Virus record (IMG/VR): IMGVR_UViG_3300024503_000485
Coordinates: 62,001 to 126,000 of that record
DNA length: 64,000 bases
Reading direction: 5' to 3' (one strand)
Notes under the pieces: model-generated
Told to the model about the DNA's origin: nothing
The model's input: the letters and a program-made list of their open reading frames with translations, nothing else
Databases searched by the model: none
Shown: in pieces, positions 25,714 to 53,349 of the stretch
How positions within the stretch are numbered: the stretch's first letter is position 1
Layout: each line of letters begins with the position of its first letter
Program-made: the position numbers and the translations under genes

Positions 25714-25778
25714 AAAGCCCTCGCTATCCCCCCGACTTCAACTGCTACAAAGACTATGTGTATTTATACGCAGCTTGA

Positions 25779-26216: not shown

Positions 26217-26238
26217 AGTAGTGTATTTATCAGATAGT

Positions 26239-26261
26239 AAAAAAGCCCCTTTCGGGGCTTT
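26239..26261 (-). terminator. Intrinsic terminator after carbamoyltransferase
   Basis: AAAGCCCC-GAAA-GGGGCTTT plus U tract. Confidence 0.85.
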
Positions 26262-26263
26262 GT

Positions 26264-28090
26264 TTATTTGTTAGCAATTTTAACTAGTTTGCCATATTCT
26301 GGCAAATATAGATACTCAATTTCGGACTGCTGTAAGGTCCACAAAGCATCTTCTAGTGTTTCGACTAACGGTTCACCGCCCAAGTTAAAGCTAGTATTGA
26401 ATAAAATAGGAATTCCTGTTTCTTCTTTAAATGCTTTAATTAGATTATAATAGTGTGTATTTTGCTCTTCTGTAACCGTTTGGATTCGACAAGTTCCGTC
26501 TACGTGAATAATACTTGGAATCTTTTCAGCAACTCCCGGTTGACAATTTACAGCATACATCATAAATGGGCTATCTTTCATCCCTCGAAGATCAAACCAC
26601 TCGTGTACATCATCTTGTAAAATTGTACCAGCAAATGGTCGGAAATATTCACGACGCTTAACCGTATTGACAAAATCCTTACCATCTTCAAATGTTGGAT
26701 CAAAGAGTACTGAACGATTTCCTAGGGCACGTGGACCGTTTTCCGAGCGTCCTTGGAAAATTGTAACAATATTTTTGTCACGTAACAGCTTAACAATATC
26801 TTTGTGTGTAGCGTCAGTAAGTTCTCCACCAAAATCTTCAACTTGTTTTTTAATTTCTTCGTTGGTGTAAGATTGTGGTGGTCCGAGATAAAGTGTTGTA
26901 CCTGGACGAATAGTTTCGTCATCTTGCATACCGTACCAGAACATGAGTGCTGCACCGATAGCAGTTCCAGCATCATTACTAATTGGTTCTACATAAATTT
27001 CAATACCGTCATTTTTTAGTGCTTCTAGGTAATGATAATTTGCTACACAATTAAGACCATATCCGCCGCTGATCACAACACGATTTTTTCCGCTTTTTTC
27101 AACAGCTTTTCTAATTAATTTTACTACTTGTTCTTGAGTTTGTGTTTGAACAGCATATGCTAAGTCTCGACGACTTTGCAGATACGTAACATCATCGGTT
27201 GGGTCTGCTGGGTACTCGTCAAGTTCGTCAAATAGTTGAGCATTAACCATTCCACTCATTGGATATTTTGGAACAATCACGTTTCTGTCTGTCAATGGAA
27301 TCCGTGATCTTTCATCAAATAATGGAGGAATTTTATCATTTGGTTTACCATACGGGAACAATCCCATGGTTTTGCCTGCTTCAATTGCAGAAAATCCACA
27401 ATACTCAGTTACTGCTTCATAGGCCTTAACAATACCTGCATGATCAGTAATCCATGCTTCATGGGTATCACCGTCTTCTCCTATTGCATTACTTGGAAAT
27501 TCTGGCGCATAATTAGCGGCTACTGCATCTCTTGCACCATAATGCTTATACAATGTTTTAAAATTTGCAGGATAATCGCAATCAACAATAGATTCGACTT
27601 CCCAAACCCAAATTCCGTTATCCCCGTAACTCATTGGATAAAATGTTCCTGCACCGTCAACAACTAACGAAACGGCATCTTTCCAACCCGAACGATAAAA
27701 TGCGCAGGCTGCGTGTAGTTTGTGGTGCATAAAACTTAGGTCAATAACCTGAGGATGGCGATGCAGGTCGGGAACTTTACGATTAATCAAACCTAATTTT
27801 CTTGCTAGGCCTGTATAAACGTCATCGCCTGTATAATCAACTTTACCTGCTGTTTCATACAAGTTCTGAGTATGTGCAATAATCAAATAATCTAACTTAT
27901 CTGTGTATTCTAAAATCTTTACCATTGAAGCAAACGGACCGCCATCGTATTTTTGACGACTTAGACGTTCTTCTTCAATGCTAAAAACAATTTCTCCATC
28001 TTTTAAAAGACACACTCCTGAGTTATGTCCTCGTGCAATAGCAGCAATCCAAACTGGTTTATCTGATTTACTAATTGATTTTACGGTCAT
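26264..28090 (-). CDS. O-carbamoyltransferase, CmcH/NodU/TobZ family
   Basis: EEERLSRQK, HHKLHA, VVDGAG, GKTMGL.PYG, SGGYGLNCVAN, DAGTAIGAA, GPRALGNRS, KRREYFRPFA, HVDGTCRIQTV, NTSFNLGGEPLV. Confidence 0.93.
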   Translation of the reverse strand: MTVKSISKSDKPVWIAAIARGHNSGVCLLKDGEIVFSIEEERLSRQKYDGGPFASMVKILEYTDKLDYLIIAHTQNLYETAGKVDYTGDDVYTGLARKLGLINRKVPDLHRHPQVIDLSFMHHKLHAACAFYRSGWKDAVSLVVDGAGTFYPMSYGDNGIWVWEVESIVDCDYPANFKTLYKHYGARDAVAANYAPEFPSNAIGEDGDTHEAWITDHAGIVKAYEAVTEYCGFSAIEAGKTMGLFPYGKPNDKIPPLFDERSRIPLTDRNVIVPKYPMSGMVNAQLFDELDEYPADPTDDVTYLQSRRDLAYAVQTQTQEQVVKLIRKAVEKSGKNRVVISGGYGLNCVANYHYLEALKNDGIEIYVEPISNDAGTAIGAALMFWYGMQDDETIRPGTTLYLGPPQSYTNEEIKKQVEDFGGELTDATHKDIVKLLRDKNIVTIFQGRSENGPRALGNRSVLFDPTFEDGKDFVNTVKRREYFRPFAGTILQDDVHEWFDLRGMKDSPFMMYAVNCQPGVAEKIPSIIHVDGTCRIQTVTEEQNTHYYNLIKAFKEETGIPILFNTSFNLGGEPLVETLEDALWTLQQSEIEYLYLPEYGKLVKIANK

Positions 28091-29022
28091 TCTTTTTTCC
28101 CTAATACGTGATTTACTACTAGTGTAGTTATGTCTTCGTTCATAGACATAATGTTTTCGTTTGATCTATTAATTCTTTCATCTGGGAAGATTCTAATAGG
28201 ATCGTATTCTCTGTTTACTTCTCCCATATCTAAAATATCAAAGTCAGGGCAGTTAGGGAACGATACGTTAATAGGGAAAGTCCCGCCAGTTACTACAACT
28301 GCTTCTTTATTCATAGAATATGCTAAATGCTGGCCCAAGCTATCGCAACCTAAAAACTTATCTGCATATTTGATAACTGCGGCCCACACTCTAATGTTTA
28401 CATTTTCTGGTACAGCAACTTCGTCTTTAAGTTTTGCATCAGAAAAATCAACTTTAAATTCGCTCATCATAATAACACCAAAGTCATTATTTTGCAATTT
28501 TTTAACAATTGATTTAACATCACGTAATTCAAAACTTCTTGAAGTTCTGTCAATTAGTGTTTCGTCGATGTATTCAATACCACGACCAAAAGGTTGAAAC
28601 ACAACTACTTTTTCTTTTTTAAGTTTTTTCTTAACATCACTGACCATTTGTCGGCCATATAGCATTTCTTCTTTGCTTAGACGCAGGGTTGGTCTAGGAA
28701 GATCTCTAATACCTTTATTGTTAACTTGAATGTCAAACGCTTGTGCAATTGAACATTGTTGATTGTAATATTCCCAAATTCTATATGGTTCTGTGGTAAC
28801 AATTTCGCGATCTTTTAAATAATCTTTAAAAAGATTTTTATGCCATACATCGTATGTTCTATTATCAAGGGTAGGATGACCCTTAAAAATATCTGTTCCA
28901 CCTTCGCAGACAATAATAAAATCTTTATCGTCTGATTCTTTTTCATATAGTTCAAAAGCAGGAATAGATGCAATCATTCTACCTGCTCCACCGTTAATAA
29001 AAAATGCTTTGGATCTGCTCAT
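28087..29022 (-). CDS. GT9 (heptosyltransferase)-like GT-B glycosyltransferase
   Basis: NGGAGR.IASIPA N-terminus, VVFQPFG, and AAVIKYADKFLGCDSLGQHLA...VVVTG GT9 signature. Confidence 0.75.
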   Translation of the reverse strand: MSRSKAFFINGGAGRMIASIPAFELYEKESDDKDFIIVCEGGTDIFKGHPTLDNRTYDVWHKNLFKDYLKDREIVTTEPYRIWEYYNQQCSIAQAFDIQVNNKGIRDLPRPTLRLSKEEMLYGRQMVSDVKKKLKKEKVVVFQPFGRGIEYIDETLIDRTSRSFELRDVKSIVKKLQNNDFGVIMMSEFKVDFSDAKLKDEVAVPENVNIRVWAAVIKYADKFLGCDSLGQHLAYSMNKEAVVVTGGTFPINVSFPNCPDFDILDMGEVNREYDPIRIFPDERINRSNENIMSMNEDITTLVVNHVLGKKE

Positions 29023-29031
29023 TTAAACTCC

Positions 29032-29086
29032 AAAAAAATAGCCTTGTACTTCATTATATAGTCATATAACGAAAAGCACAAGGCTA
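29032..29086 (-). terminator. Long terminator hairpin with U7 tract containing a sigma70-like promoter
   Basis: TAGCCTTGTGCT..TCGTTATAT-GACT-ATATAATGA-AGTACAAGGCTA-T7; TTGTGC-N17-TATAAT inside. Confidence 0.7.
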
Positions 29087-29105
29087 ATCTTGGTTTAAAT
29101 TTTAA

Positions 29106-29750
29106 TTATAGAGCAGGTTGAATTGGATAAGGAATTTTCCAATGATCTACGCCAGCATACTTTGTTTCAATTGTTCTTAAAAACTCAGCATGTTGCTCAA
29201 TCTTTTCTAGCTGTTCTGGCAAATAGTTACCTGAACTTGCAGCTTCCTCAAAAGTTTTTAATTGAGACTTTTGAGATTCAAAGAACGAAGCTCTAGTGAT
29301 AGCATGGTTTCTATATCTTGGCATTATCCAAGAACTAGTTGCTGCATCCCATTTTGCATCGTTGGTGTAAAATGGTTGTGTGCAACAGCCGTGCTCGTCA
29401 TCATAATGATATTCGTACTTTTCACCTGTTGGAAGTGTTTCTACATAGTTTGGTACAGGACTTTGCTCATATTCGTGAGTAATATAAGATGCTAAAAATG
29501 GATTTTGATCAGCGTCGAGTACAACTTGAATATGACCCTCTGGGTCTAGATTCTCTTGAGCAATTTTCCATTTTTCTAATGCTTCTAAGGTTTCTTCACC
29601 TTCGTCCCAAGCAAACACAGCACCCGTAGCTTTTACTACTCTGATGAGCAGATATCTAGGGCCTGTATAAACACAATCAACCGTTCTGTTTAATTTTGTT
29701 GTGGTCTTGTATGGCTCATCTGGCAATACTGCTTTAAATGCTTTTCTCAT
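29106..29750 (-). CDS. Hypothetical protein, possible tail fibre assembly chaperone
   Basis: Start reassigned to MRKAFK (ATG 29750, AAGGA SD); C-terminus FLRTI...WKIPYPIQP resembles Tfa-type chaperone ends; follows adhesin-like genes. Confidence 0.5.
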   Translation of the reverse strand: MRKAFKAVLPDEPYKTTTKLNRTVDCVYTGPRYLLIRVVKATGAVFAWDEGEETLEALEKWKIAQENLDPEGHIQVVLDADQNPFLASYITHEYEQSPVPNYVETLPTGEKYEYHYDDEHGCCTQPFYTNDAKWDAATSSWIMPRYRNHAITRASFFESQKSQLKTFEEAASSGNYLPEQLEKIEQHAEFLRTIETKYAGVDHWKIPYPIQPAL

Positions 29751-29754
29751 GTTT

Positions 29755-30747
29755 TTAATCCTTAGGTATAAAGTTAATTCTAACTGCACCCATGCCGCCT
29801 CTCCAACCGTTATCTCTAACGTCACCGCATGGTGTTGCTGGATGTCCGCCTATGCCAATTGGCCAAAATGGTTGACAACCTTGTACATCGTAGCATCCGC
29901 ACGATCTAATTGTAGTATAACAAGTAGTCCATGGAATACCTCTAACTGGGCTTCGACTCATGCCGTTAAGTGCATTAATAAACTGGTGATATCCCATTCC
30001 TGACCATTCAGAGAATCCATTATCACCTTCTGTTCCGTATGAAACAACGCCACCATCGCAGGCAAATAGTCCTGGAGGAACAGCTACGTGGTAATGAGTT
30101 GAACATGGGCAGTTACCATAACCAGTCCAGAATGTTACACAGCTAAATCCGCCGCGTTTATTAATATCTCCGCCGTAGGCTTCTGCACAACAGCTACCAG
30201 TTCCTGATCCATAATTACAAATAATACCACAACATCCGTTTGAATAGTTGGTATTACAGAAATTACCTGCTACAAAGCAACAGAACATAACGCCGGATGG
30301 GTTACAGAATGTTGTGCCTCCACGGCCGCCTTGTGTACAAATACATCCGTTAGTTGCTGCACCAGTTAATGGAACACGGCCAAACCAGCATAAGCAGGTT
30401 GCTTCTGAACAACCACGGAAACATAGTGTATCAGCATTGTTACAGCTCTTTCCAATGTATCCACAGACATAACAGCCTGCAACTACGCAGAAACATTTTC
30501 TTGCCCATGCTCCTGGATTTCCTGGAACACCGTGTCCACAGCAGCACATACGTGCTCCTGAACCACCAGCACCCCAAACGTCCATGATAACACGACCTGT
30601 TTGGCAGGCTACCCAGCAAAATCCGTTTACATAGTTATTGTATTCAGCTGACGGTGTATAAAACCAAATTTGTCCTTTTTCAAGATTTGATTCATCCCAT
30701 TCAATTTGGTTTAATTTATTTTCTACTAATGTTTTTAAGGTAGCCAT
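29755..30747 (-). CDS. Cysteine-rich glycine-rich-domain protein 3 (adhesin-like)
   Basis: DVWGAGGSGARMCCC...GGMGAVRI; 34 Cys in 330 aa by manual count; start MATLKT. Confidence 0.75.
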   Translation of the reverse strand: MATLKTLVENKLNQIEWDESNLEKGQIWFYTPSAEYNNYVNGFCWVACQTGRVIMDVWGAGGSGARMCCCGHGVPGNPGAWARKCFCVVAGCYVCGYIGKSCNNADTLCFRGCSEATCLCWFGRVPLTGAATNGCICTQGGRGGTTFCNPSGVMFCCFVAGNFCNTNYSNGCCGIICNYGSGTGSCCAEAYGGDINKRGGFSCVTFWTGYGNCPCSTHYHVAVPPGLFACDGGVVSYGTEGDNGFSEWSGMGYHQFINALNGMSRSPVRGIPWTTCYTTIRSCGCYDVQGCQPFWPIGIGGHPATPCGDVRDNGWRGGMGAVRINFIPKD

Positions 30748-30748
30748 A

Positions 30749-31978
30749 TTAGTACGCATTGCCTCCGTCAGTTGGAATGTATTTAATTCTTACCATACCC
30801 ATACCACCTCTCATAGCATGGTCACGAACACCCGGACATGGGTGAGGTGCTGCACCAGGTACTCCGTAAGGAACATAATGCATACATCCTTCCATTTCGT
30901 AGCATCCGCAAGCACGGTCTGAACGCCAGCAACGAATATTTACTAGGTGTCCAGGTTGTCTAGATAAACCAGTTAATCCGTTTAGGTGATGTGGTTTAGT
31001 GCTTCCTGACCAGTTAACCATTGGTGAATCATTTTCAGTTGTGTATGTATATGATCCGCCGTCGTTGGCAAAAATACCCGGAGATGTAGTAATGTGATAC
31101 TGGAACATACATGTACACATTGGTAAACATCCTTGCCAGCTTACACAGCTAAATCCGCCACAGCAGTTAATATCGCCGCCGTAGCCGCAGGCTTGGAATG
31201 AAGCTGAACTGGGCCAATCACTTGGATTCCAGTTACAGATCATACCGCAAGCAGAGCGAGAAATATCACACATATTGTGTTGTGTACTTAATTTTGTTCC
31301 GCACCATGCGTTGGTTATGTAGCAAGAGTATGGTGATTTATCATCAATACAATAACTAATACCACCACGACCACCCTGAGAACATAAACAGCCATTTGAT
31401 GCACCTGCTGCACAGCAAATACCCCAGTTAGCGCAGCCTTGGCCGCCATAACGTCCACATTGGCCGCCTTCAAATTGAATGCCGCCACCGGCATTGCCGT
31501 ACGGATCGCCTGCCATTGGGTTTCCGCCACCTTGGCCCCATCCCCACGGATTGTTGCCTCTAAATGATTCTTGTCTATTTGGTTCTTGTCCGCCTTCCCA
31601 TACAGGTTTAGGAGCACAACCAAACCAGCATACGCAGGTTGCTTCCGAACATCCTCTAAAACAAAGTGCTGAAGAGTTGTTGCATGAACGACCTACATAC
31701 CCGCAAACATAGTTTGAAGGACATACACAAATACATTTTTTTACATAGGCTGCTGGGTTTCCAGGTAATCCCACACCGCAGCAACACATTTGTGCGCCTG
31801 ATCCAGACGCACCCCAAATTTCAATAATTGCTTTACCGCATCCTGGTGGTTTCCAACAGAAACCATTACAGAATGATGTGTACATATTGCCGTCTGAGTA
31901 AACCCAGATACGACCTTTTTCTAAGTTATCTTCCCAGGCTAATTCACGATTACCTAATAATTGTGTTAATGTTGACAT
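30749..31978 (-). CDS. Cysteine-rich glycine-rich-domain protein 2 (adhesin-like, with Gly-rich insertion)
   Basis: EIWGASGSGAQMCCC...GGMGMVRI; 40 Cys in 409 aa; start MSTLTQ by TAATG overlap. Confidence 0.75.
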   Translation of the reverse strand: MSTLTQLLGNRELAWEDNLEKGRIWVYSDGNMYTSFCNGFCWKPPGCGKAIIEIWGASGSGAQMCCCGVGLPGNPAAYVKKCICVCPSNYVCGYVGRSCNNSSALCFRGCSEATCVCWFGCAPKPVWEGGQEPNRQESFRGNNPWGWGQGGGNPMAGDPYGNAGGGIQFEGGQCGRYGGQGCANWGICCAAGASNGCLCSQGGRGGISYCIDDKSPYSCYITNAWCGTKLSTQHNMCDISRSACGMICNWNPSDWPSSASFQACGYGGDINCCGGFSCVSWQGCLPMCTCMFQYHITTSPGIFANDGGSYTYTTENDSPMVNWSGSTKPHHLNGLTGLSRQPGHLVNIRCWRSDRACGCYEMEGCMHYVPYGVPGAAPHPCPGVRDHAMRGGMGMVRIKYIPTDGGNAY

Positions 31979-33006
31979 TAGTAACCGCCTCCTAGTCTTG
32001 AGCAATTCTGTTCATATATTCCAGAACCTCTATATGTTAATCTAATTGCACCGTGGCCGCCTCGTCTGCCGTGGTCACGAACGTCTGGACATGGAAACGG
32101 AGGTCCACCGGCTACACCATACGGCATATGAACTTGACAACCGTTTTGTTCATAACATCCACATGATTGAGTGCCTGAATAGCAAGTGTGCCATGGCATA
32201 CCGCCACTTGGCCATTTACCTACGTTGTTAATTGCATATTGTTGATTGTAGTTACCCATTCCTGACCATTCAGAATATTCTGGGTCTGCATCGTTAATAT
32301 ACGATAAGTAACCACCTTGTGTACTATACACGCCAGCAGCAAAAGGAATGTAAACTTCAGTTTGGCAAGGACATGATGGATAGCAACCTTTAAAGTGTAC
32401 ATATCCAACGCAACCGCAGCAGTTAATGTCGCCACCGTAGCCGCAGGCAATCCATGCGCCTGGACATTGGTTACACACAATTGCGCAGTTATCGCAACCT
32501 GTTGGAGAATTATAACGTGTTGTACAGAATGTACAATATAGATAACAGCAATAAGCAGATGTTGAAGTTGAGCATATAGCAATGCCTCCACGTCCGCCTT
32601 GAGCACACATACATCCGCCGGTATAACCGCAAAGGTCTCGAGCATTACCCCATCTTAGATATGACGGGTCGCTGCATCCTGAAAAACATAAGCTGTGAGA
32701 GTTACAAGACATTGATGGACAAGCACAAATATAGCTGCCACAAAAAACTGCAATAGTCTTTTTAGAATATGCCGGAGCATTTCCTGGAAGGCCAAAGCCA
32801 CAACAGCACATACGAGCGCCGCTGCCTGCTGCACCCCACATCTCAATAGTTAGTGTTCCACAACCAGGTGATGTCCAGCAGTACAACATGTCAGATCTAA
32901 TACATGAATACATGCCGGTGGGTGAGACCGTCCAGACCTTGCCTTTTTCAAGATTATCCTGATTGGCTGTAATCTCTCTTGTAGATAATAGGTCTGATAA
33001 TTTCAT
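31978..33006 (-). CDS. Cysteine-rich glycine-rich-domain protein 1 (adhesin-like)
   Basis: EMWGAAGSGARMCCC...GGHGAIRL; 37 Cys in 342 aa. Confidence 0.75.
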   Translation of the reverse strand: MKLSDLLSTREITANQDNLEKGKVWTVSPTGMYSCIRSDMLYCWTSPGCGTLTIEMWGAAGSGARMCCCGFGLPGNAPAYSKKTIAVFCGSYICACPSMSCNSHSLCFSGCSDPSYLRWGNARDLCGYTGGCMCAQGGRGGIAICSTSTSAYCCYLYCTFCTTRYNSPTGCDNCAIVCNQCPGAWIACGYGGDINCCGCVGYVHFKGCYPSCPCQTEVYIPFAAGVYSTQGGYLSYINDADPEYSEWSGMGNYNQQYAINNVGKWPSGGMPWHTCYSGTQSCGCYEQNGCQVHMPYGVAGGPPFPCPDVRDHGRRGGHGAIRLTYRGSGIYEQNCSRLGGGY

Positions 33007-33019
33007 TTGTTTTCCCTAA

Positions 33020-33346
33020 TTATGGTCCAATAAATACCCAACCAAATGTTGAGCCTGAATAAATCATTGTTACCGCAGCATTGTTAAGGTTTAAAACTAA
33101 ATCTTCTGATAAGTTTTGAATTTTATTACCATTTCTGCCAATGGTTACGTTGTTAGTAGCAAAGTTTCCTGCTACGTCAATAATTTGAATTGTATCACCT
33201 ACTGATGGTGATGCTGGTAAAGTAAGAGTAAAAGCTGTTGATGTTGCATCAGCAAAAATTCTTTCTCCAGAATTCAATGTTGTTGATGAAGTTAACGTTC
33301 TGTTAGTTACTGCATCTGTTCCGAAGGATGATACCTGTCTTCCCAT
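33020..33346 (-). CDS. Small tail-fibre domain protein
   Basis: TLTLPASPSVGD.IQIID..G.F..NNVTI.RNG..I....DL......GW module typical of T4-like fibre/baseplate proteins. Confidence 0.7.
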   Translation of the reverse strand: MGRQVSSFGTDAVTNRTLTSSTTLNSGERIFADATSTAFTLTLPASPSVGDTIQIIDVAGNFATNNVTIGRNGNKIQNLSEDLVLNLNNAAVTMIYSGSTFGWVFIGP

Positions 33347-33366: not shown

Positions 33367-33687
33367 TTAAGTTGTAGATGTCTCAATACCAAACGCATTC
33401 ACTGATACGTTTGCATTGCTGGCATAAACAACTAAATTTTTACCAGCATTCATCATAATACCTGTTCTCTCTAGCACACCGTTTGCACCAACTTGCACAT
33501 CATATTCAATGTATTCTGCGTTTGTCGGAGTCGAAGTTGCAGCTAGAGCCATTCTAATACTCACTGCTGTTGTTCCTCTATTCAAAACGTTAATTGATAG
33601 TACGGTGAAATAACCAGTTGGAACGGTATAGACTACGGTATTGGTAGCTGATGCTAACGCTGATTGTCCTAATAATCCTGTTGCCAT
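33367..33687 (-). CDS. Small beta-rich virion protein (paralog family with 48863 and 52968)
   Basis: VYTVP...INVLN...YIEYD.......LERTGI pattern. Confidence 0.65.
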   Translation of the reverse strand: MATGLLGQSALASATNTVVYTVPTGYFTVLSINVLNRGTTAVSIRMALAATSTPTNAEYIEYDVQVGANGVLERTGIMMNAGKNLVVYASNANVSVNAFGIETSTT

Positions 33688-33701: not shown

Positions 33702-36700
33702 TTATTTGTTCAATAAAAAGTAGTTCAATACCAGTGGATCGCCAGCAATACCGCCTTTGAAATTCACCTTAGTATTTATGTTGATTTGAACATTCGTAGT
33801 AGTAGCGATGGTCTGACCAGCTATGTATACAACGCCCGCTGTTAGGGTGTTTACGTTCAAACTAGAACCGCCGCCACCAATTTGGCTTGTTATATATGCT
33901 TTAATAGCACGTTGAGTTGGAATAACAGAGTCCGAATCTTGTGTAAAGAACGGATCTGTTGAAAATTCAGAAATTGTTGCTCCTGAACCGCCCAATGCTA
34001 CAGAACCCAGCGAAAGTTCGTTCAACCCTGCAATATTAAATGCGTCAGCATTCAATGTTGCAACACCAGTTGATTGCTCAACGTTGAATAATCCACCAAC
34101 TCTAAAGTTACCGTCTTGGTCAGTACTTGTGTAGAACACACGACCGCCTTCTGAGCCAACGGTTTCGTTAGCAGGAACTGGATCTTGTAACGGCAAGTCT
34201 GGGTAATTTGTTTGTGTTTTATTACCTGTTCCCACGTCTAAGAAATCATGTCCTGTTAAACGAACCTGTGAATAACGTCTACGAATTGAAATTGCTGTTT
34301 CATGATCCGGTGCTTCGGCAGCTCCCAATGCTGGACTTAGTTGTAGAGTTGCATTGTAAGTACCGTCAGTATTTGGTATTAATCCAGTTACGGTAACTAG
34401 TCTATACCAAACATCGTTAATTCCTGCGATCTGAACGTTTGAACCTGCTCTTGGAACATCGGTTAGATTCTTAAATCCAACATATGAACTTACTTGATAG
34501 TTGTCAGCATATCCGTCGCCTGTTACGGTTGCAGATGCTGCGGTATAACCTGTTCCTCTATTGGTCCAAATTGGTTGACTTAATGCTCCATCTCCTACTC
34601 TAATTTCGACGGTTGCATCTGATCCTGTGTTATTAGGATCAGTGATAGTCATAGTTGGAGCACTTGAGTAACCACTACCTGGTTCGTGAATCCAAATTTC
34701 AGTAATTTGGTTATTTGTTACATAAGCTCTGGCTCTAGTCTTGGCGCCAGCAACTACGCCTTGTGCTTTTGGACTTGTTGGAGCAAGTACCATCCATTTT
34801 GGACTTCCAGAAATACTTCCTAATGCAGATGCTACGTATTCTTTAGCCACTACCGCTGTCATTGTTCCAGATGCCGCTGAAAGAACTAGGGCGGATCCGC
34901 CTTTAGATGTAGATACTGAGAATTGTGTAGTATTTGTAGATTCAACACTAATTACCCAATAGTATGTGTCATTTCTAACACCACCAAATGTAGTGCCTGT
35001 GAATCTTACACGATCATTTACACTAATATTTGCTGTTGTATCAGATGTTGTTATTAAATTTGTATTCAATACAAAATTAATGCTTGCAGCACCACTCGAT
35101 GCTGTAGTTGGAAGTGCTACATTTCTATTATTTCCATAGGCCGCAGCATTCCAGTTACGTGTTGCAGGTAGTGCTGGACCTTCTACCCATGTAATACCAT
35201 CTGTAGAATATGCTGTTCTTGTAGAGTTATAAGCAAAAGCTGTATAAGCTCCGCCACCATAAACAACTCTATACCAACGTGCTGCTGCACCCGGCATAGT
35301 TGCCGATGTCCATGATGTACCGTTTGATGAGTAAGCAGCCTTAGTTGAAGTTCCATTTGGTCCTCCAGCTACCGTTACAAACTTACCATTGCCATAAACT
35401 ACTGAACTCCAGTAGTCTGCACTTGGCAATGTATTACCTGCGGTCCAAGTAATACCGTCTGTAGAATAAGCACTTAATTGGCTAGTTGCTGTAATACCTG
35501 TTACTACAACATAATATGCTGTTGCTCCTGGCTGACCGTATGCAATACTTGTATATTCTGTTGAGCTAGCACTAATTGTGCCGTTTAACCATGTTACCCC
35601 ATCTGTTGAGTAAGCGGTTCTATTTTGTCCACCGCTAATTGCAACATATTTGCTGCCAGCATAGATCATATCTGACCACTGGCCTTGAGTTGGAATAGCG
35701 TTAGTAGTTCCTGTCCATGTTACTCCATCTGTAGATGTAGCAAGATGACGTGTATTTGCTATAACAGCAATATACTGATTAGAACCGTTATATGCAATTG
35801 CTGTATATTCCCATGAACTCGATGGTGTTGCTAGTGTAACAGATGTCCATGTTTCGCCGTCTGTACTTGAAGCAGCATATGGAGTTGCTACGTTATCGTG
35901 ACCAACTGCAACAAATTTGCTGCCTGTCCAGATAACATCTTGCCAATATGCACTTGCAGGCAATGTTCTTGCAGTATATGATCCAGGATTAGTATCTTTA
36001 GCTGTTGTTGAAATTGCTAGGCTAGCATGTGAACCGTCACGTAGTGTCCACGTTACACCATCTTCAGATGTTGCTGCGTAATCACCGTACGATGTTACGT
36101 AGAATACACCGCCGCCATAGTTAATAGAACTCCACTCATATATTCCTGGAAGTGTGCTGGCTGTCCATGTTGCGCCATCAAATGAGTAAGCTGCATTTCC
36201 AGAGCTGTCTGAAATTGCCACATAACGTCCGTTACCATAAGCAACGTCAATCCAATTTGATGTAGTTGAGTCATTGTTAGCTGGTAGGCTAGTTGCTCCA
36301 ACGGTCCATGTTGATCCATCTGTTGAATAAGCACTTGCTCTGCTGAAGCCGCCACCGATCATAACAAATCTATTATAACCGTATGTAACTGCTACTGCAT
36401 CAACGCTCTGTGTTGAAGTTGACCATGAAGTTCCTGTTGTACTTACAGAGTAATAAGCAGAACCAGATGTTCTAGAAACAGCAACAAACTTTTGATTACC
36501 GTAGGTAACATCTGACCATGAAGCTGATGTTCCTAAACTTGCGCTAGTCCAATTAATACCATCTGTTGAGTATGCAGCACTTGTGCCACCACTTGCTACT
36601 GCTACAAAGTAACTAACTCCTGTGCTAACTTGGCCGTAGGCAATAGCGGTCCATGTTGCAGATGCTGGTAAAGTCATTGCAGTCCATGTTGATCCGTCTG

Positions 36701-39700
36701 CGGAATAAGCACCACTGGCTGTTCCACTAGCTATGGCTACGTATTTTGGTGTTACAGCAGTACCAGATACTGACACGCTTGTAATTCCACCACTTACACC
36801 GGATACGGTTGACACGGTGATTGTTAAATTATTAGTTGGCGTGGTACCACCTAAACTTGCACCTAAAATTGTAACGGTATCACCAACTGCATATAATACA
36901 CCCGGCGAATTGATAGTTACACTATAAACTCCATTTCTTCTAGAAACATCAAATGTTGCTAGATTTCCTGAACCGCTTGTAGTTCCAGATAGTCCGGTGT
37001 AAGTTGAATAACCATCGCCAAATGCAATGTCTGTCCAGGTAGAACTTGCTGGAAGAGTTGATAATGATTTAGTAAATGCAGGTGCTGTAAATGATAGTCT
37101 TGGAGTAATAACATAAGTTGATGTTAAACTTAGCGAGCTAGCAATTGCAGTTCCTGGAACAACGTGATCCCAACCTGCTGTACCTGTTGATTCTTTATAA
37201 ACGGTAGCTACTTTTGAACCAGCGTTATAAGAATTAATATAACCGTATTGTCCTGCACCTGTACCTGCTGTAATATAAACAGCCATTCCAACGTATGCAG
37301 AACTTGTTGCTGTATCTGCTGCGGCAAGTGTAATTTGAGTTGTGTTTCCTGCCTGAGCTTGGTTAGAAGCAGTGACATAACCAGTGCCGCCTGTTCCGGA
37401 GCTATCGCCTGGATCAGTTAATCTAACTTGGAACACTCCGTTATCGCGGAATTCTCCCATTCTAGTTGCTGCACTATAGCCTGCACCGGATATTGAATAC
37501 GACCCTGTATGATAATCGCTACCAGCGTTTCCATATTCTAATAATAAAATATTGTTACCGTCAGTAATAACGTTTCTAATATCTGCTTCTGTTGAACGGT
37601 TATTGATTAAACCGGTAATTGGTGTTTCAGTAACATCAACGCCTTCTGCTACAGCACCATAGTCGCCGTAAGAGTTGTTACCGTTTGTTCCGCGAATTTT
37701 ACCGCCGTTTTCTGCTAGATAGCCAACGTGTGCATAGTAAGTAAAGATCGAAACAAGTTCTGCACGACCTAAGTTAGTTACCCATGCGCCAATTCCATCG
37801 CTAATAACTTGAGTAAAGTCATTAGACACCATCGAATCAACACCGCCATTGTGTAATGAGCCGTCAATCTTCTGACCAACAGCCGCTGTACCAAAGGTTG
37901 TAACGTTTTGTGTATATGTTGATTTGTTAGTTACCCACACGCGGTCATCGTTTGGTCCCCAACCATAGTCTAGAGAAACATAAGAACCTGCTAATGGACG
38001 TTGTGTACCAAATTCGTTTGCTGGTAATAGGCCTGTTGCGCTTACTGGGTTAGCTCCAGGTGTTGTTCCGTCTGAGCTTCCGTCAAGGCCTAGTAATGTT
38101 TGATTTCTAACTCCACAACCGTTTCTAACTAGATACATATCTTCTAGTTTTGAACCAGTTAATGCGTTTCTGTAATAACGAGCTGCTAATGCAGATTTGT
38201 AGTTTCCTGTATATTTTAAATCGTAAGCTAGTGCTTCAACGTAATTTCTAATATCGTTTTGGCAGTAAGAGCTTAGATAGTAGAATGTCATAGTCATTGA
38301 TCCAGAGGCTGCTGATAAATCAAGAGCTCCTGTCAATGATTCTGAAGTACTGATCTTAAATTGTGTTGCACTTATAATGCTATAAATGTAATATGTTGTT
38401 CCTGTTGAAACACCACCAAATGTAGTACCAGTAAATCTTACAGCATCTCCGACTTGCATCCATGCTGTGCTTGAGCAAGTTAGTTTATCATCTGAAGTTG
38501 TTGCTGTTACGGTTGCTTTGTAAGTGTTGTTGATATAAGCTGTTGCTTCTGCGGCTAAAAATTCTTTGTTTAGTAGTAGAATTTCTGCAGCATTTAACAC
38601 ATCTAAATCTTTTGTTGGAACATTTGTTCCAGTAACAATTGGAAGTGCTCCTGAATTTGCATATCCGATGATGTTTGAAAGTAAAATTTCTACTTGAGAA
38701 ACTGCATCGCCGGCAGCAACTAGCGCAGAACGAACTCCAATAAAGTCAATAATTCTACTAGTTGCTTCTAACTGGCTAGCAAGAACAACACCAGTTGAAG
38801 AAAGGCCTCTTTGATATGCCATTCCGTTTTGAATCGATAAGAAGTTTGATCCAAACATCATATCGTAGCCTAGTGCATCTACAATATACCCAACGTCTCG
38901 TGAACATAATGTTTCGTCAAAGTCTAATGTTGCAAATTCTCTCTTAATATGTTGAACCGCATCAGTTTGAATAGATGTTTTAGCTGCTTGTAATGTTGTA
39001 TTAGCGGCAGAAAGTGTTGCACTTACCCATGTTGTTTCTGGGGCAACACTAGATGGTGTTGTGCCAGTATTGATAGTGTCACGTATTTCTGTTAAACGTG
39101 TTGCTGCATAAGTACCAGCTGTTGAACTTCCTGCTGTGCCTGTTGTATCTTGAGTAGCAGCATTTCCTGTTGTCTTTGTCCAGCTACCTGTATTACCTTG
39201 TGCAATGTAAGTAATAATTGCAATTAAACGATTTTGCACAGCAATAGCAGCAGTTTTCTCGGATGAAGGTTCAACAAATGTTCCATTACTATAATATGAA
39301 CGTGCAGCAATAACGGTTGCTAGGTTACCACCATACATTAAATCATAATACAATGCTTCAACAATATATCCAATGTCTCTTGTACATGCTGTTTGTCCAG
39401 ATACTCCTAAACTAGTCCATAAAGAACTATAGTTTAAAACCATATATGCTGTAACTTCAGCTTGTAAAAATGATTTGTTAGCAAGAATTAATCTTGCGGC
39501 ATTGTAATAACCTGAAGTATAACCATAAGTTCCGCCGGTTGGTGTTGGACGAACATAAGAATCTGCATAAGCAAGACCGTTGTTAAGAACATCTTTAATT
39601 TCTCTTGCATTGTTTACAATAGAAAGTGCAGAAGTAGATAGTCTTAATTGTTCTTGAACTTTAGCAAAGATAAAATCTACGGTTGCTAAGGTTGGAGCAA

Positions 39701-42700
39701 GTTGGCTATTTAAAACAACCTGTGTTGATGTGATTCCTCTTCTATATGAACTTGCGGTTTTAATAGACATATAATTAGAACCAAACAAGAAGTCATAGTA
39801 TAATGCATCAATAATATATCCTGTATCTCTCTTACATAGAGTTTCATCATATGATAGAGTTGGGAAATATTCGTTAATATATTCGATTGTTTCTGTTTGA
39901 ATATATGATTTTGCAGCAAGAATTTTAGCACCAGCAGTTAACAAACCTGCGGCTGGCCATGTAATATCTGGAGCAACGGTTGTTGGTGCTGTTCCAGTGT
40001 TGATTGTGTCATAAATTTCTTGAACACGAGTCTGTGCAGTTGTCGCTGCACCTGCTGAGCCAGCTGTACCTGAAGTATCTTGTGTAGATGTGTTTCCTGT
40101 AGACTTAGTCCATCCGCCAGTATTACCAGTTGCAATATTGTCAATAATGTCTTTGATTCTATTAACGGTGGCTAATAGTGCTGTTTTTTGACCTGCTGGT
40201 TCTACTAATACTCCGTTACTATAATAAGCACGAGCGGCAATTACGGTTTGTAGATTACCGCCGTATGTTAAATCGTATACAAGAGCGTCTACAATGTAGC
40301 CCATATCACGAGTACATTTTGCTTTATCTCCTGCGCTTAATGCTGTCCAAACAGCATTATAGTTTGTATTCATATATGCTGAAACTTCGTCTTGAATAAA
40401 AGACTTGTTAGCAAGAATTAAACGAGCCGCATTTAGATAGCCTGCATCTGAAGCATTGTTAGATCCGCCTGTTGGAGTTGGATATACAAATGCTGATGCA
40501 TACGAATCTCCAAGTTCAATTACTTTCTTCATTTCTAAGATATTACTATCTGTGAATAAAGTAGCTGCTCCGGTGCCTGTGCCTGCTCTTTGTCCTGTTG
40601 TATTCTGTGTTTCGCTGTTTCCTGTTGTAGGTGTCACAGCAGTATTTGTAATAATATCATCAACAATAGATTGAATACGTTGAAGAGCTGATATAGATTT
40701 AGTTTTTTCATTAGCTGAAATTACACTTGGTGATGCTTCAGTTCTTGTTCCACGTAATTCATCTCCAACCACTGCGGTATTTGCAGGTACGATAATTGGT
40801 AATGTTTCATAATAATGGCCGGTTTTAACAAAAATTGTAAAGTGTGGAATTTCTTCTGCTGGAAGAGAATCTGTATCTCCGGCTGTGATTGCATCTGTTA
40901 CTATAGAAACTAAAGACGAAACTAAGTCTGATGCATCGGTTTCGGCTGTATAGTTTGTGTCAATTACCTGTTTAATTCTGTTTCCTACAGAAATACCATT
41001 CAATGTTTGATAATTTGCAGCAGGTGCAGCATTAGATAAAATGCTATCCATCAAACTTACACCGTAATTAATTGCAGCAACGGTCTGAGCTTCTTGTCCG
41101 CTAATATAGCTTGCGCCTAATGTTGTAAAATAGGCTTGAGCAGCTTCTATAGTTTTACCATTTCCTGTATGAGAAATATCATAGACAATAGCATCTACTA
41201 ATAGACCCATATCTCTTTGGCAAATAGTTTTATCATATGAGAAACCTGACCAAATTCCTGTGCCTGCGGTAATTTGATAATCAACCCATTCAACAATTTC
41301 TTTCTGAATAAATGTTCTGTTGATAGAAAGTAGATATTTTGCATTTGGGTATTCAGTACCTGCTTCAACTTGTTGAGCAGCATATCTTACACTTGCCCAT
41401 GGTTGGTCAATGGTTAGACCAAATGTTGGAGCAGGAGTGTTTGTTCCGTGAGGGGCAACATAATAAACTTTTGATACACGACCAAAGTATGCCCATGCTG
41501 GATAACCACCATCTACTGAAAGTACCTGACCTTCGTCGCCTATTGGTAATCTTGTTGGGCCAGATCCTGAATAATAAACTAAGTCGCCAGCAGTAGTAAG
41601 TACGCTTTCTTCGTTACCTGCTGTTAATAAATTCCAATAAGTTCCAAGAGTGTCGTTATCTGGACGGCTTGGTGTTGATGCTGTGTGGGCTTGAACACAA
41701 ATATAAGAATTTGGTCCATACTTAACTGCGTCGCCTAAAATATAAGCCGTTGAAGTTACCCATGTGCTTCTCCACTTGATACCTTCGTTTAATAAACTCC
41801 AATACGATGCGTTTGGCGGTCTTTGGTTTGAATTATCGGCTGTGGCAACATAGGTAAAACCGCCGTTACGAACAATTTCGCCAACTTTATAAGATGCACC
41901 AGACGACCAATCGCCAGCAAGTCTAAATCCTGTTGTAAACAAATCCCAATCTGTTGAATTAGTTGACGGTGCAAATCCGCCAGCAGATACATGATCTGTT
42001 TTTGCAATATAAGTATTTCCACCGTAGCGAACAATATCGCCGGGTTGATATGTTGTACCTGAAGTCCAATCGCTTTCAAATTCAACACCTTCAACAAATT
42101 GATTCCATTTAGCAACATCGGTTACAAAACTTGCTGCTGCTGTGTGGTCAGTAATACAAATATAAACGCCACCGCCATTTTTAACTAGGTCGTTGACCTT
42201 GTATCTTGTTGCTGTAGTCCATGCACCTTTGTATTCAACGCCTTGATTAAAATAATCCCACTTGCTTTGATCAGCTTCTAATCCAAGAGCAACGGTAGCA
42301 GCTGATGTATGATATTCGTTACATACATATGTTGTACCGCCGTACTTGATAACATCGCCTAGTTTATATCTAGTAGATGATGTCCATGCACCTTTCCAAT
42401 CAAGTCCTTTAGAAAATAAATCCCACTTGCTTTGATCAGCTTCTAATCCAAGAGCATTTGTACCTGCGGCAGTATGTGCGGTGTTACATAGGTAGGTGTA
42501 ACCACCGTACTTAACAATATCATTTACTTTATATGTTGTTCCAGCGACCCATGCACTCTTCCAATCAAAACTTTCTGCAAATAAATCCCAATCGCTTTGA
42601 TTATCTTCTAATGTCGAATCACTAGTATGTCCATTATTACAAATATAAACATAACCACCGTACTTAACGATGTCGTTTTCTTTGTAAAGTGTTGTTGCAG

Positions 42701-42917: not shown

Positions 42918-42972
42918 TTATAGCTCCGTTATGCAAGTATTAATATTTATTCAATCCGTAAATGCTAGGTTT

Positions 42973-52424: not shown

Positions 52425-52470
52425 TTACGTATCTCCGCTCCATTGATACGTATATTTAACCGTTTTAATA

Positions 52471-53336: not shown

Positions 53337-53349
53337 GTTTTTCTATCTC

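Follow-up and report, generated by a model that had tools for sequence, protein, structure and literature searches.

Phages of aquatic habitats carry sugar-modifying enzymes that have long been regarded as host "LPS genes", and the locus studied here raises the question of what such enzymes act on when they lie directly beside genes for tail-fibre tips. In a stretch of 64,000 nucleotides of viral DNA (hereafter the window), three cysteine-packed proteins with the predicted fold of fibre tips and their chaperone are encoded next to a heptosyltransferase-like enzyme and a carbamoyltransferase. To investigate whether this neighborhood reflects a functional connection, we first re-examined each gene and then asked how often the genes occur together in other phages. 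The recurrence of the pairing suggests that the enzymes could decorate the phage's own fibres, although the acceptor, the sugar, and the role of the cysteines are inferred.

Genes and predicted folds of the cassette

All genes listed by the first-pass annotation exist, and its observation was confirmed. The cassette consists of the following features on the minus strand.

33773..33779 (-): ATAAATA late-promoter-like motif, 86 nt upstream of the first small fibre gene.
33367..33687 (-): small fibre-associated protein (106 aa, 0 Cys), the first gene of the module.
33020..33346 (-): small fibre-associated protein (108 aa, 0 Cys) resembling the N-terminal parts of tail fibre and tailspike proteins.
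31978..33006 (-): Cys-rich protein of the predicted glycine-rich-domain fibre-tip type, paralog 1 (342 aa, 37 Cys).
30749..31978 (-): Cys-rich paralog 2 (409 aa from the ATG, 40 Cys), with an insertion of about 80 aa rich in Gly, Trp and Pro.
29755..30759 (-): Cys-rich paralog 3 (334 aa, 34 Cys).
29106..29750 (-): Tfa-type tail-fibre assembly chaperone (214 aa from the ATG).
29021..29100 (-): stable hairpin followed by U7, a candidate attenuator or terminator, the outer stem of which covers the ribosome-binding site and start codon of the following gene.
28087..29022 (-): glycosyltransferase (GT) of predicted GT-B fold, GT9-like, a putative heptosyltransferase (311 aa).
26264..28090 (-): O-carbamoyltransferase (CT) of the TobZ/NodU/CmcH family (608 aa), overlapping the GT gene by ATGA.
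26242..26261 (-): intrinsic terminator closing the cassette (8-bp GC-rich stem plus T-run), followed by a new ATAAATA motif at 26224.

The Cys counts were recomputed exactly as 37/342, 40/409-418 and 34/334, corresponding to 9.6-10.8%, whereas the flanking proteins contain 0-1.6% Cys. This enrichment is not a matter of chance. Among 2473 distinct ORFs of at least 150 aa in all fetched loci, the Cys content was bimodal, with 2114 ORFs below 5%, 352 at 7% or more, and almost none between. The motifs NLEKG, (E/D)xWGAxGSGAxMCCC, QGGRGG, YGGDIN, CGCY and GGxGx(V/I)R(I/L) are present in all three paralogs. Two gene starts needed correction. Paralog 2 begins at the ATG at 31978, in a TAATG overlap with the stop of paralog 1 and preceded by AGGAGG, giving 409 aa rather than starting at the TTG, and the chaperone begins at the ATG at 29750.

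The small proteins at the head of the module gave PHROG tail-fibre hits; the 108-aa protein hit 16 PHROG families, mostly tail proteins, with a best E of 1.2e-21. The 106-aa protein is present upstream of the Cys-rich genes in nearly all loci described below, and the position of the 108-aa protein is likewise conserved. Paralog 1 matched phrog_4205 (E 5.9e-9). None of the three window paralogs reached any Pfam threshold, but their homologs in S-CAM3 and S-SSM7 passed that of PF21722 Gly_rich_2. An AlphaFold model of paralog 3 (pLDDT 90.1, pTM 0.86) was matched by Foldseek to the cyanophage Pam3 fibre gp24 (PDB 7ypx, 7yfw), the Bxb1 tail tip (9d93) and the ALK/LTK glycine-rich domain, as well as to about 126 BFVD proteins, many of them named "glycine-rich domain-containing". 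The framework motifs WGAGGxG...GGxGxVRI are shared. The Cys-rich proteins are thus predicted to have the glycine-rich-domain fold of phage fibre and receptor-binding proteins, as the first-pass annotation had proposed.

Neither the chaperone nor the GT was detectable in the window proteins by Pfam alone, but both identities were supported at the family level, and that of the GT also at the fold level. The chaperone matched phrog_9740, 6 of 37 homologs hit PF16778 Phage_tail_APC (best E 2.5e-10), and a C-terminal (V/I)DxWK(I/V)P(F/Y)P motif is conserved. For the GT, 40 of 55 homologs hit PF01075 (best E 2.7e-8). In the Foldseek search with its AlphaFold model (pLDDT 91.7), the 31 best PDB hits, including 3tov, WaaF, TibC and WaaC, were all GT9 enzymes apart from one chain of an NDH-PSI supercomplex (9grx) at rank 14. 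The hhalign comparison against WaaC/F/Q/U gave 94.7% probability and aligned D227 and H232 to D261 and H266 of WaaC, indicating a conserved C-terminal donor-binding signature. However, the N-terminal domain could not be aligned, and the loop where WaaC carries its catalytic Asp reads NGGAGR in the phage enzyme, a mapping made by analogy, and therefore its chemistry may differ. The CT is of the NodU/TobZ type, with Pfam Carbam_trans_C (E 3.5e-58), Carbam_trans_N (E 3e-28), the PHROG family "Nol-like carbamoyltransferase" (E 1.8e-170), and PDB sequence matches including 7xb6 (E 7e-57), NovN, GdmN and TobZ.

The window contains 10 copies of ATAAATA against 26 expected, and 8 of the 9 minus-strand copies lie just 5' of gene starts, although the promoter function is inferred. 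The cassette lies between structural genes on the same strand, and no such motif occurs between 33773 and 26224. On the other hand, the hairpin between the chaperone and the GT, which the first-pass annotation did not report, is strongly terminator-like (-32.6 kcal/mol, z = -8.2), and a comparably stable structure (z of -4 or lower) occurs in about 40 of 58 distinct loci, including S-CAM3. Its inferred function allows separate regulation of the enzymes and weakens the argument for a single late operon.

Linkage between Cys-rich proteins and the two enzymes

Next, we were interested in whether the Cys-rich proteins and the enzymes co-occur in other genomes, the criterion by which the first-pass annotation had proposed its idea could fail. 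In about 170 loci from viral and genome collections, the outcome was strongly in favor of the linkage. Of 80 loci seeded on the GT, all with enough DNA have the order small proteins, two to three Cys-rich proteins, chaperone, GT and CT. Of 80 loci seeded on the Cys-rich protein, 62 have both enzymes, 14 run off the contig end, and 4 apparent orphans remain; for the one orphan contig that was followed, the cassette lies 22 kb downstream. Apart from these apparent orphans, no genome with the Cys-rich proteins but without the enzymes was found. The isolates S-CAM3, S-SSM7 and P-SSM2 carry the same cassette.

The linkage persisted at deep divergence. At 36-37% GT identity (the two loci L362 and L363), the GT and CT still overlap by 4 nt and still follow Cys-rich proteins of 670 aa with 68 Cys, 249 aa with 22 Cys, and 598 aa with 52 Cys, and a Tfa-like protein is also present in L362. 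In Aeromonas phage HJ05, at 25% GT identity, the GT sits inside the tail module directly after a 559-aa protein with 23 Cys. Conversely, in Syn9, where no GT or CT was found in the fibre region examined, the glycine-rich-domain proteins are Cys-poor (0.8-2.5%).

One could argue that the adjacency is merely historical, originating from a mobile accessory island that landed once beside the fibre genes. Many sampled loci are indeed related to one another, mostly coming from related aquatic phages, so that part of the synteny is shared ancestry. In three loci, the enzyme block is inverted as a unit and thus behaves as a separable module, and this variable region of cyanomyovirus genomes also collects other enzymes such as halogenases and 2OG oxygenases. 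However, the linkage survives inversion, insertion of extra genes (an SGNH-like gene, a second GT, a second CT), replacement of the Cys-rich protein family, and transfer between phage lineages with different capsid genes. We therefore consider hitch-hiking very unlikely. The window itself is not clearly derived from a T4-like cyanophage, as its capsid protein is closest to jumbo myoviruses.

Possible acceptors of the enzymes and roles of the cysteines

The first-pass annotation suggested that many Cys lie in CxCxC strand positions and differ between paralogs, fitting surface acceptor or metal sites better than fixed disulfides, and that the receptor-binding tips may be decorated with (carbamoylated) sugars, possibly S-linked, or be metal-loaded. 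This interpretation was only partly supported. CxCxC occurs only once, the actual pattern being CxC with 5-6 per protein, and most Cys do not differ between paralogs: 22 Cys columns are shared by all three, and 22 of the 34 Cys of paralog 3 are at least 70% conserved across 251 distinct family members. The remaining variable positions alternate with Thr, Ser or Ala.

We speculated on several scenarios. In the one we favor, with moderate confidence, the region is a conserved fibre-tip module of an aquatic myovirus, in which three old, non-redundant paralogs encode small fibre or adhesin proteins with an N-terminal docking helix followed by a beta-rich glycine-rich domain of the Pam3 gp24/ALK type. 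About two thirds of the roughly 35 cysteines would be framework positions, probably disulfide or metal staples, and about one third variable. A Tfa-type chaperone would fold the adhesins, and a leaky terminator would lower the dosage of the two enzymes, which would be translationally coupled. The GT would most likely transfer a heptose from ADP-heptose onto the Cys-rich proteins, or a neighboring fibre protein, in the cytoplasm before assembly, and the CT would then O-carbamoylate this sugar, so that the receptor-binding tips carry carbamoyl-heptose. Our analysis established the gene identities, the folds and the genomic linkage across deep divergence, whereas the protein acceptor, the heptose donor, the carbamoylation of the sugar and the structural role of the Cys are inferred; no direct evidence shows that any virion protein is glycosylated. 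In about 15 of the GT-seeded loci and in the isolates, the CT is followed by a five-gene sugar-nucleotide module (pfkB kinase, nucleotidyltransferase, HAD phosphatase, cupin and epimerase), which annotators relate to ADP-heptose synthesis. However, the 64 kb of the window contain no sugar-nucleotide genes. The three paralogs are presumably maintained as distinct proteins, because array position is phylogenetically conserved, with 18 label changes on the tree against 49.5 for shuffled labels, and paralog 1 forms a position-specific clade.

Alternatively, the enzymes could remodel the envelope of the infected cell, for example for superinfection exclusion or to block adsorption of progeny to debris, as the published work reads these genes (PMC1079782, PMC3037559, PMC12801897), and would merely sit next to the fibre genes. 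GT9 enzymes are mostly LPS heptosyltransferases, WapO carbamoylates an LPS heptose, the hairpin separates the enzymes from the structural genes, and the sugar-nucleotide module also occurs without a nearby CT in 52 of 80 loci within 6 kb. Yet the GT remains attached to Cys-rich fibre-module proteins down to 25-37% identity, in different phage types and in a phage of a different host, a position that a host-directed enzyme has no reason to keep, and the enzymes lie inside the structural gene block on the same strand, between fibre genes. Moreover, marine picocyanobacterial LPS is not known to contain the Kdo-heptose inner core used by WaaC-type enzymes. We thus regard this explanation as unlikely.

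It is also conceivable, though doubtful, that the cysteines are purely structural or metal-binding, making disulfide-stapled or Zn/Fe-loaded adhesins hardened for life in seawater, and that the enzymes act on another fibre protein or a small molecule. The Cys framework is conserved, one group of four Cys (C139, C287, C289, C295) is gained and lost together, Pam3 virions carry functional disulfides (PMC9942802), and Cys-rich beta-solenoid proteins with internal disulfides exist. This view does not explain why a GT9-like gene follows Cys-rich proteins of different families in distant phages. Besides, half of the 251 family members have an odd number of Cys, so not all can be in intrachain disulfides. 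For the framework Cys, this reading is compatible with the favored model and hence only partly a rival.

Finally, the cysteines themselves could be the acceptors, either of S-linked heptose added by the GT or of S-carbamoylation of protein thiols by the CT, as HypF performs on HypE, which would protect or tune the many thiols of proteins made in a reducing cytoplasm and released into oxic water. The odd Cys counts and the variable positions would agree with this, as would the fact that Cys-richness, rather than sequence family, tracks the GT at deep divergence: the L362 proteins are missed by the family HMM and have no Pfam glycine-rich-domain hit. The CT also gives a weak, below-threshold hit to the HypF Kae1-like subdomain, and the GT lacks an acidic residue where, by analogy, WaaC has its catalytic base. 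Nevertheless, the CT is far closer to O-carbamoyltransferases of sugars and polyketides (E 1e-42 to 7e-57), no GT9 enzyme is known to make S-glycosides, and 22 of 34 Cys are conserved framework positions, typical of structural Cys. We consider such chemistry highly unlikely.

Comparison with described systems

The best structural match of paralog 3, Pam3 gp24 with its chaperone gp25 (PMC9942802, PMC9608196), is likewise a small protein (250-340 aa for both) with an N-terminal helix followed by beta-rich TNF-like and glycine-rich parts, and in both cases the chaperone gene lies directly downstream. The match is at the fold level only, with 11% identity and TM 0.40-0.51. The window proteins contain about 10% Cys and only 15-16.5% Gly, come as three maintained paralogs, and are preceded by two small proteins and followed by two sugar-modifying enzymes that Pam3 is not reported to have. 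Their Cys content is four- to ten-fold higher than in the Cys-poor glycine-rich-domain proteins of Syn9. Glycine-rich-domain tail-fibre proteins also occur in giant viruses.

Among GT9 enzymes, TibC/AAH provide the precedent of a cytoplasmic enzyme decorating a beta-rich adhesin, by protein O-heptosylation of autotransporters, whereas WaaC and WaaF act on the LPS core. The phage GT shares only about 10% identity with these enzymes and, at 311 aa against about 400 for TibC, has no room for the extra iron-binding and oligomerisation parts of TibC; no autotransporter and no LPS genes lie nearby. The proposed product has a precedent in WapO (PA5005), a NodU-family carbamoyltransferase that, paired with GT9 heptosyltransferases, puts a 7-O-carbamoyl group on heptose II of the Pseudomonas LPS core (PMC8005017), where the acceptor is LPS and the genes belong to a cellular cluster, while the pair described here sits in a phage fibre module.

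The "LPS gene clusters" and "Nol-like carbamoyltransferase" auxiliary genes of the cyanomyoviruses P-SSM2, S-SSM7 and S-SM2 (T4-GC 302/303; PMC1079782, PMC3037559) belong to the same gene families, and the P-SSM2, S-SSM7 and S-CAM3 genes are homologs in the same order. These papers treat the genes as host-surface genes or as "stuffer" DNA and do not mention the Cys-rich proteins or the chaperone upstream. In mycobacteriophages, phage-encoded glycosyltransferases placed beside structural genes glycosylate virion proteins (Freeman et al. 2023, cited in PMC12801897 and PMC12619734), but they modify capsid and tail-tube C-termini and belong to other GT families, with no carbamoyltransferase, Cys-rich acceptor or fibre-tip target involved.

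Gene content and predicted identities of the cassette

All genes of the cassette lie on the minus strand and, read in the direction of transcription, they follow one another in tight succession.

Elements of the cassette region, in the direction of transcription (minus strand)
33702-42917, fibre protein of 3071 aa, upstream of the module
33367-33687, small protein of 106 aa, 0 Cys
33020-33346, small protein of 108 aa, 0 Cys
31978-33006, Cys-rich paralog 1, 342 aa, 37 Cys
30749-31978, Cys-rich paralog 2, 409 aa, 40 Cys
29755-30759, Cys-rich paralog 3, 334 aa, 34 Cys
29106-29750, chaperone-like protein of 214 aa
gap of 83 nt, holding a hairpin (29021-29100)
28087-29022, GT-like protein of 311 aa
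26264-28090, carbamoyltransferase of 608 aa
26242-26261, terminator

Further fibre-like and structural genes of 145, 197 and 2153 aa follow. Paralog 2 starts in a TAATG overlap with paralog 1 behind an AGGAGG, and the GT and carbamoyltransferase genes overlap by ATGA. What the first-pass annotation had observed in this region is confirmed: the Cys counts of 37, 40 and 34 are exact, and the motifs it listed as shared by the paralogs, NLEKG, (E/D)xWGAxGSGAxMCCC, QGGRGG, YGGDIN, CGCY and GGxGx(V/I)R(I/L), are all present. The high Cys content is not a compositional accident. Among 2473 distinct ORFs of at least 150 aa from all loci fetched, Cys content is bimodal, with 2114 ORFs below 5%, 352 at 7% or more, and almost none between. 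Paralog 2 additionally carries an insertion of about 80 residues (residues about 120-200) rich in Gly, Trp, Pro and Asn, which is absent from paralogs 1 and 3, and its orthologs in related phages are similarly long (394-428 aa).

The carbamoyltransferase is unambiguous. Both Pfam domains of the NodU/CmcH/TobZ O-carbamoyltransferases, Carbam_trans_C (YrdC-like) and Carbam_trans_N (Kae1-like), are far above threshold, with 196.4 bits against a cutoff of 27 and 99.7 bits against a cutoff of 24, and the sequence matches in the PDB, including 7xb6, NovN, GdmN and TobZ, run from E 7e-57 to 1e-41. The metal-binding His motif of the Kae1-like domain is visible as HHKLHAACAF followed by VVDGAG, also in the distant homolog of locus L362, a phage contig binned into a MAG. 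A HypF-type protein S-carbamoyltransferase is not supported by sequence, because the only HypF hit is a below-threshold one to HypF_C_2 (22.4 bits against a cutoff of 27) and the closest solved relatives are all O-carbamoyltransferases.

The GT-like protein has no hit of its own to the GT9 family (Pfam PF01075), even at E of 10 or below, and single-sequence and small-profile searches of the PDB gave only noise. However, 40 of 55 aligned homologs hit PF01075 at E of 0.1 or below, with a best E of 2.7e-8. A confident AlphaFold model (pLDDT 91.7) has a GT-B two-Rossmann fold, of which the 31 best Foldseek matches in the PDB are GT9 enzymes (3tov, 1psw, 4rap/4rb4, 2h1h, 2gt1 and 6dfe, including WaaF, TibC and WaaC), apart from one chain of an NDH-PSI supercomplex (9grx) at rank 14, with E from 4e-10 to 4e-6. 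A profile-profile comparison (hhalign) of the 55 phage sequences with E. coli WaaC/F/Q/U gave 94.7% probability and E 6e-8 over the C-terminal nucleotide-sugar-binding signature, aligning the invariant D227 and H232 to WaaC D261 and H266. The N-terminal domain, where WaaC carries its catalytic Asp (D13) at the start of helix 1, was left unaligned, and the loop after strand 1 reads NGGAGR without an acidic residue. Thus, the term GT9-like is justified, whereas heptosyltransferase activity remains an inference. Membership in the BAHT protein heptosyltransferases (TibC, AAH) is not supported. These enzymes have extra iron-binding and oligomerisation elements on the GT9 core (about 400 aa) and an autotransporter acceptor encoded nearby, but the fold of the phage protein matches TibC no better than WaaC or WaaF, the protein has 311 aa with only three conserved Cys (C39, C90 and C226), and no autotransporter is found in the neighbourhood.

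The protein following the paralogs has no Pfam hit at E of 1 or below in the window copy. Six of 37 aligned homologs hit the tail-fibre assembly chaperone family PF16778 (Phage_tail_APC), with a best E of 2.5e-10. Its position directly after the fibre-tip genes and the C-terminal (V/I)DxWK(I/V)P(F/Y)P motif shared by the family fit a Tfa-like chaperone.

None of the three Cys-rich paralogs has a Pfam hit and they hit only an uncharacterised PHROG, but their homologs in the isolates S-CAM3 (33.9 bits) and S-SSM7 (24.9 bits) pass the 24.3-bit cutoff of Gly_rich_2 (PF21722). The model of paralog 3 (pLDDT 90.1, pTM 0.86) shows a helix at residues 8-22 followed by strands, in agreement with an N-terminal helix followed by TNF-like and glycine-rich beta-rich domains. 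Its best matches in the PDB are the cyanophage Pam3 fibre gp24, Bxb1 tail-tip chains and the ALK/LTK glycine-rich domain, and it also matches more than 100 viral glycine-rich-domain proteins in BFVD, including Syn9 gp38. Pam3 gp24 is folded by a chaperone encoded next to it (PMC9942802; PMC9608196). That the window proteins form a trimeric, receptor-binding fibre on the virion is inferred only from the Pam3 analogy (PMC9608196) and from their position in the fibre gene block. A relation to the T-even/S16 gp38-type adhesins is not supported, as no S16 gp38 entry is among the 50 listed PDB matches and the connection is only indirect, through the comparison made in the Pam3 paper. Direct comparison of the Cys-rich family with Syn9 gp38 by hhalign was weak (17% probability), so the sequence-level link to Cys-poor glycine-rich-domain proteins rests on the Pfam hits of relatives and on the predicted fold. 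Likewise, megablast of the region and tblastn of paralog 3 against 50,697 phage records found nothing, although homologs exist there. The family is too divergent or too compositionally odd for BLAST, and we therefore used HMMs built from the loci. The interpretation in the first-pass annotation was thus only partly supported: its four gene assignments (adhesin-like paralogs, chaperone, GT9-like enzyme and carbamoyltransferase) are supported at the family and fold level, while its views on the cysteines fared less well, as described below.

Linkage of the cysteine-rich proteins with the two enzymes

We next examined whether the enzymes co-occur with the Cys-rich proteins in relatives, a criterion that had been set beforehand as one that could refute the proposed coupling. 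The GT has homologs in the isolates S-CAM3, S-SSM7 and P-SSM2, and in all three the order is fibre, small proteins, two or three proteins with 8-11.6% Cys, chaperone-like protein, GT and carbamoyltransferase. Of the 80 IMG/VR loci listed when seeding on the GT, at 56-100% identity, every one with enough flanking DNA shows the same module, and in three of them the enzyme block is inverted but still adjacent. In one sub-lineage (loci L055, 10939-11799; L072, 10963-11781; L074, 10993-11913; L077, 10955-11881), a gene of about 290 aa is inserted between the GT and the carbamoyltransferase. Its N-terminus reads FGCSFT..WP.WAD and resembles an SGNH/GDSL esterase or acyltransferase, although it has no Pfam hit. 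Other loci carry a second GT paralog after the carbamoyltransferase (L056, L062, L066) or a second carbamoyltransferase (S-SSM7, L067, L069, L080).

The reverse search was seeded on a narrower alignment of the Cys-rich protein, as the broad alignment lacked a conserved stretch. Of the 80 loci listed, 62 contain both enzymes, 14 run off the contig end, and four looked like orphans, each with a single Cys-rich gene. These first appeared to be counter-examples. However, the orphans belong to the same phage lineage as the window, their capsid protein being 83% identical to the window's, and the orphan gene sits in a second, head-proximal small-fibre set. The window has the same set just downstream of its capsid gene (51537-54366, minus strand), consisting of a 338-aa protein, a 122-aa relative of the 106-aa small protein, a 166-aa protein and, in the fourth position, a 295-aa protein with 0 Cys, where the sister phages have a member of the Cys-rich family. 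This difference suggests swappable tip modules. Walking along one orphan contig revealed the full cassette 22 kb downstream, with two Cys-rich genes, chaperone, GT and carbamoyltransferase, and several orphan contigs are the same contigs that carry the cassette. Genomes therefore carry either 0+3 or 1+2 Cys-rich paralogs, and no counter-example remained. The contig of a distant family member (P0235) was too short to show its downstream genes. A tree of 99 family members indicated that array position is conserved phylogenetically, with 18 label changes against 49.5 for shuffled labels and 0 of 200 shuffles as low. The three paralogs are old and maintained rather than recent duplicates.

The most distant cases are the most telling. 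A search for cellular relatives of the GT in a genome collection returned only 13 contigs (L352-L364), binned into MAGs of mutually inconsistent taxa, including Neomarinimicrobiota, Methanobacteriota, Chitinophagales and Woesearchaeota. They are phage-like in content, those long enough to judge carry phage fibre modules, and they look like mis-binned phage contigs that give no clue to the host. Two of them, L362 and L363, have GT homologs at only 36-37% identity, yet they keep the 4-nt overlap of GT and carbamoyltransferase. Directly upstream they carry Cys-rich proteins that the family HMM does not recognise, of 670 aa with 68 Cys, 249 aa with 22 Cys and 598 aa with 52 Cys. L362 also has a Tfa-like protein between them and the GT, and a GmhB-like phosphatase after the carbamoyltransferase. 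In Aeromonas phage HJ05 (L164, 6303-9507), a GT9-like gene at 25% identity and without a carbamoyltransferase sits in the tail module between a 559-aa protein with 23 Cys, which has a weak Gly_rich_2 hit, and a 189-aa protein, just before the tail sheath and tube genes. It may be a simpler, cultivable version of the same pairing. Conversely, in Syn9, where no GT or carbamoyltransferase was found in the fibre region examined, the glycine-rich-domain proteins are Gly-rich (22-35%) and Cys-poor (0.8-2.5%). Thus, what travels with the GT is a cysteine-rich fibre-module protein rather than a particular sequence family. In Syn9 (L165, 7932-23145), the glycine-rich fibre proteins gp36, gp38 and gp39 are instead followed by two tryptophan halogenases and an array of 2OG-Fe(II) oxygenases, so the slot after the fibre-tip genes holds different protein- or small-molecule-modifying enzymes in different cyanomyoviruses.

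Cysteines, putative regulatory elements and the sugar module

Across 251 distinct family members, Cys makes up 7.3-11.9% of residues, or 21-48 per protein, and exactly half of the members have an odd count. Of the 34 Cys of paralog 3, 22 are at least 70% conserved, while about ten are variable (2-37% conserved) and replaced mainly by Thr, Ser, Ala, Asn or Gly. Among the three window paralogs, 22 Cys columns are shared by all three, 11 by two, and 23 are private. The first-pass annotation had held that many Cys lie in CxCxC strand positions and differ between paralogs. That most of them differ is not borne out, and CxCxC occurs only once, whereas CxC occurs 5-6 times per protein. Mapped onto the predicted strands, the CxC pairs at 89/91, 122/124 and 139/141 lie in strands and are the more variable ones. 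The loop Cys are the conserved ones, namely the CCC at 72-74, then 106, 113, 117, 152, 160/161, 168, 177, 181, 217/219 and 280-311. One group (139, 287, 289, 295) is gained and lost together. We read this pattern, from sequence and predicted strands alone, as a conserved disulfide or metal framework plus a variable, probably surface, Cys/Thr/Ser set.

The late-promoter-like motif ATAAATA is strongly depleted in the window, with 10 copies against 26 expected (for example at 42944, 33773, 26224, 25761, 15206, 9247 and 6849). Eight of its nine minus-strand copies sit immediately 5' of gene starts, as expected of a T4-type late promoter, and the only full TATAAATA is at 25761-25768. One copy precedes the 3071-aa fibre gene, one precedes the first small protein (33773), the next follows the terminator (26224), and none lies inside the cassette. 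The gap before the GT folds into a very stable predicted hairpin followed by U7 (29021-29100, minus strand; -32.6 kcal/mol, z = -8.2). Its outer stem pairs with the GT ribosome-binding site and start codon, and its loop holds a TATAAT. A comparably stable structure is present in about 40 of 58 distinct loci, including S-CAM3. This fits an attenuator that would let only a fraction of fibre transcripts continue into the enzyme genes, but it also allows independent control, so co-transcription remains a possibility only.

In the isolates and in about 15 of the GT-seeded loci, the carbamoyltransferase is followed by a five-gene module of nucleotidyltransferase, pfkB kinase, HAD phosphatase, cupin and NDP-sugar epimerase, which annotators link to ADP-heptose. 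Two database annotations in this module of S-CAM3, S-SSM7 and P-SSM2 look wrong (L001, 12930-13587; L002, 17708-18422; L003, 13027-13708; alignment A7). The "phosphoheptose isomerase" carries a DxDGT HAD-phosphatase motif, and the "cysteine dioxygenase" has only a Cupin_2 hit and may be the missing isomerase of a heptose pathway. We had considered the latter as a Cys-directed enzyme but set it aside, given its single Cupin_2 hit and its place in the sugar-nucleotide module. We infer that the five activities match the five steps of ADP-L-glycero-D-manno-heptose synthesis if the cupin is the isomerase. The module is absent from the 64-kb window. When seeded on the phosphatase, it lies within 6 kb of a carbamoyltransferase in 28 of the 80 loci listed. 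Carbamoyl-heptose made by GT9 enzymes plus a NodU-type enzyme has a precedent in the Pseudomonas LPS core (WapO; PMC8005017).

Possible role of the cassette and its genomic setting

The papers on P-SSM2 and on 16 genomes call these genes "LPS genes" of uncertain function and list the carbamoyltransferase among cyanophage-enriched genes, and a 2025 cyanophage paper still reads such genes as host-surface modification. Full-text searches, which did not extend to subscription journals, found no paper linking the GT9-like gene or the carbamoyltransferase to the upstream Cys-rich proteins or to fibre modification. Our analysis supports the gene identifications at the family and fold level and shows a co-occurrence about as strong as genomic context can make it. 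What the enzymes do is a matter of inference from linkage and analogy, and this applies to the sugar donor and the acceptor as well. With no more than middling confidence, we favour the explanation that the enzymes decorate fibre-tip proteins with a carbamoylated heptose. Glycine-rich-domain fibres and virion glycosylation are each known already. The present case involves abundant genes whose role has been misfiled or unknown. An unlikely but not excluded possibility is that cysteine is the point of the design, in which phages would have a dedicated post-translational system for their receptor-binding tips. The GT9-derived enzyme and the carbamoyltransferase would then modify the thiols themselves, by S-heptosylation or S-carbamoylation, or residues interleaved with them, as a new class of virion modification that tunes adsorption, stability in oxic water or evasion of host defences. 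Metal loading of the cysteines likewise remains a hypothesis.

The GT family is abundant, with 2711 clusters at 90% identity in public metagenomes, whereas the Cys-rich family is narrow, with 254 clusters among 1.84 billion representatives. Together with the "Nol-like carbamoyltransferase", the GT9-like gene has been listed for twenty years as an auxiliary LPS gene of marine cyanophages with no known role. If these enzymes decorate the phage's own fibre tips, a widespread set of "host metabolism" genes becomes part of virion construction, and the host-range determinants of abundant aquatic phages would include a glycan, which sequence-based predictions of receptor binding miss. It would be a case of protein glycosylation on a glycine-rich-domain fold in a tractable system, as the cultured isolates S-CAM3, S-SSM7 and P-SSM2 carry the cassette and E. 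coli makes ADP-heptose natively. A glycine-rich domain with 10% Cys is a structural curiosity whatever the enzymes do.

The window is the structural block of a myovirus, with portal, capsid, fibres, sheath, tube and terminase, and related contigs reach 200-360 kb. Its capsid protein (gene at 55175-56344) is closest to those of the jumbo myoviruses Sinorhizobium phage Phosso (72%), Vibrio phage 2.275.O (69%), Pectobacterium phage CBB (67%) and Pseudomonas phage PA5oct (66.5%), and cyanophage matches are not among the best listed. The cassette, however, is shared between this lineage and Kyanoviridae cyanophages, which suggests module exchange between lineages.
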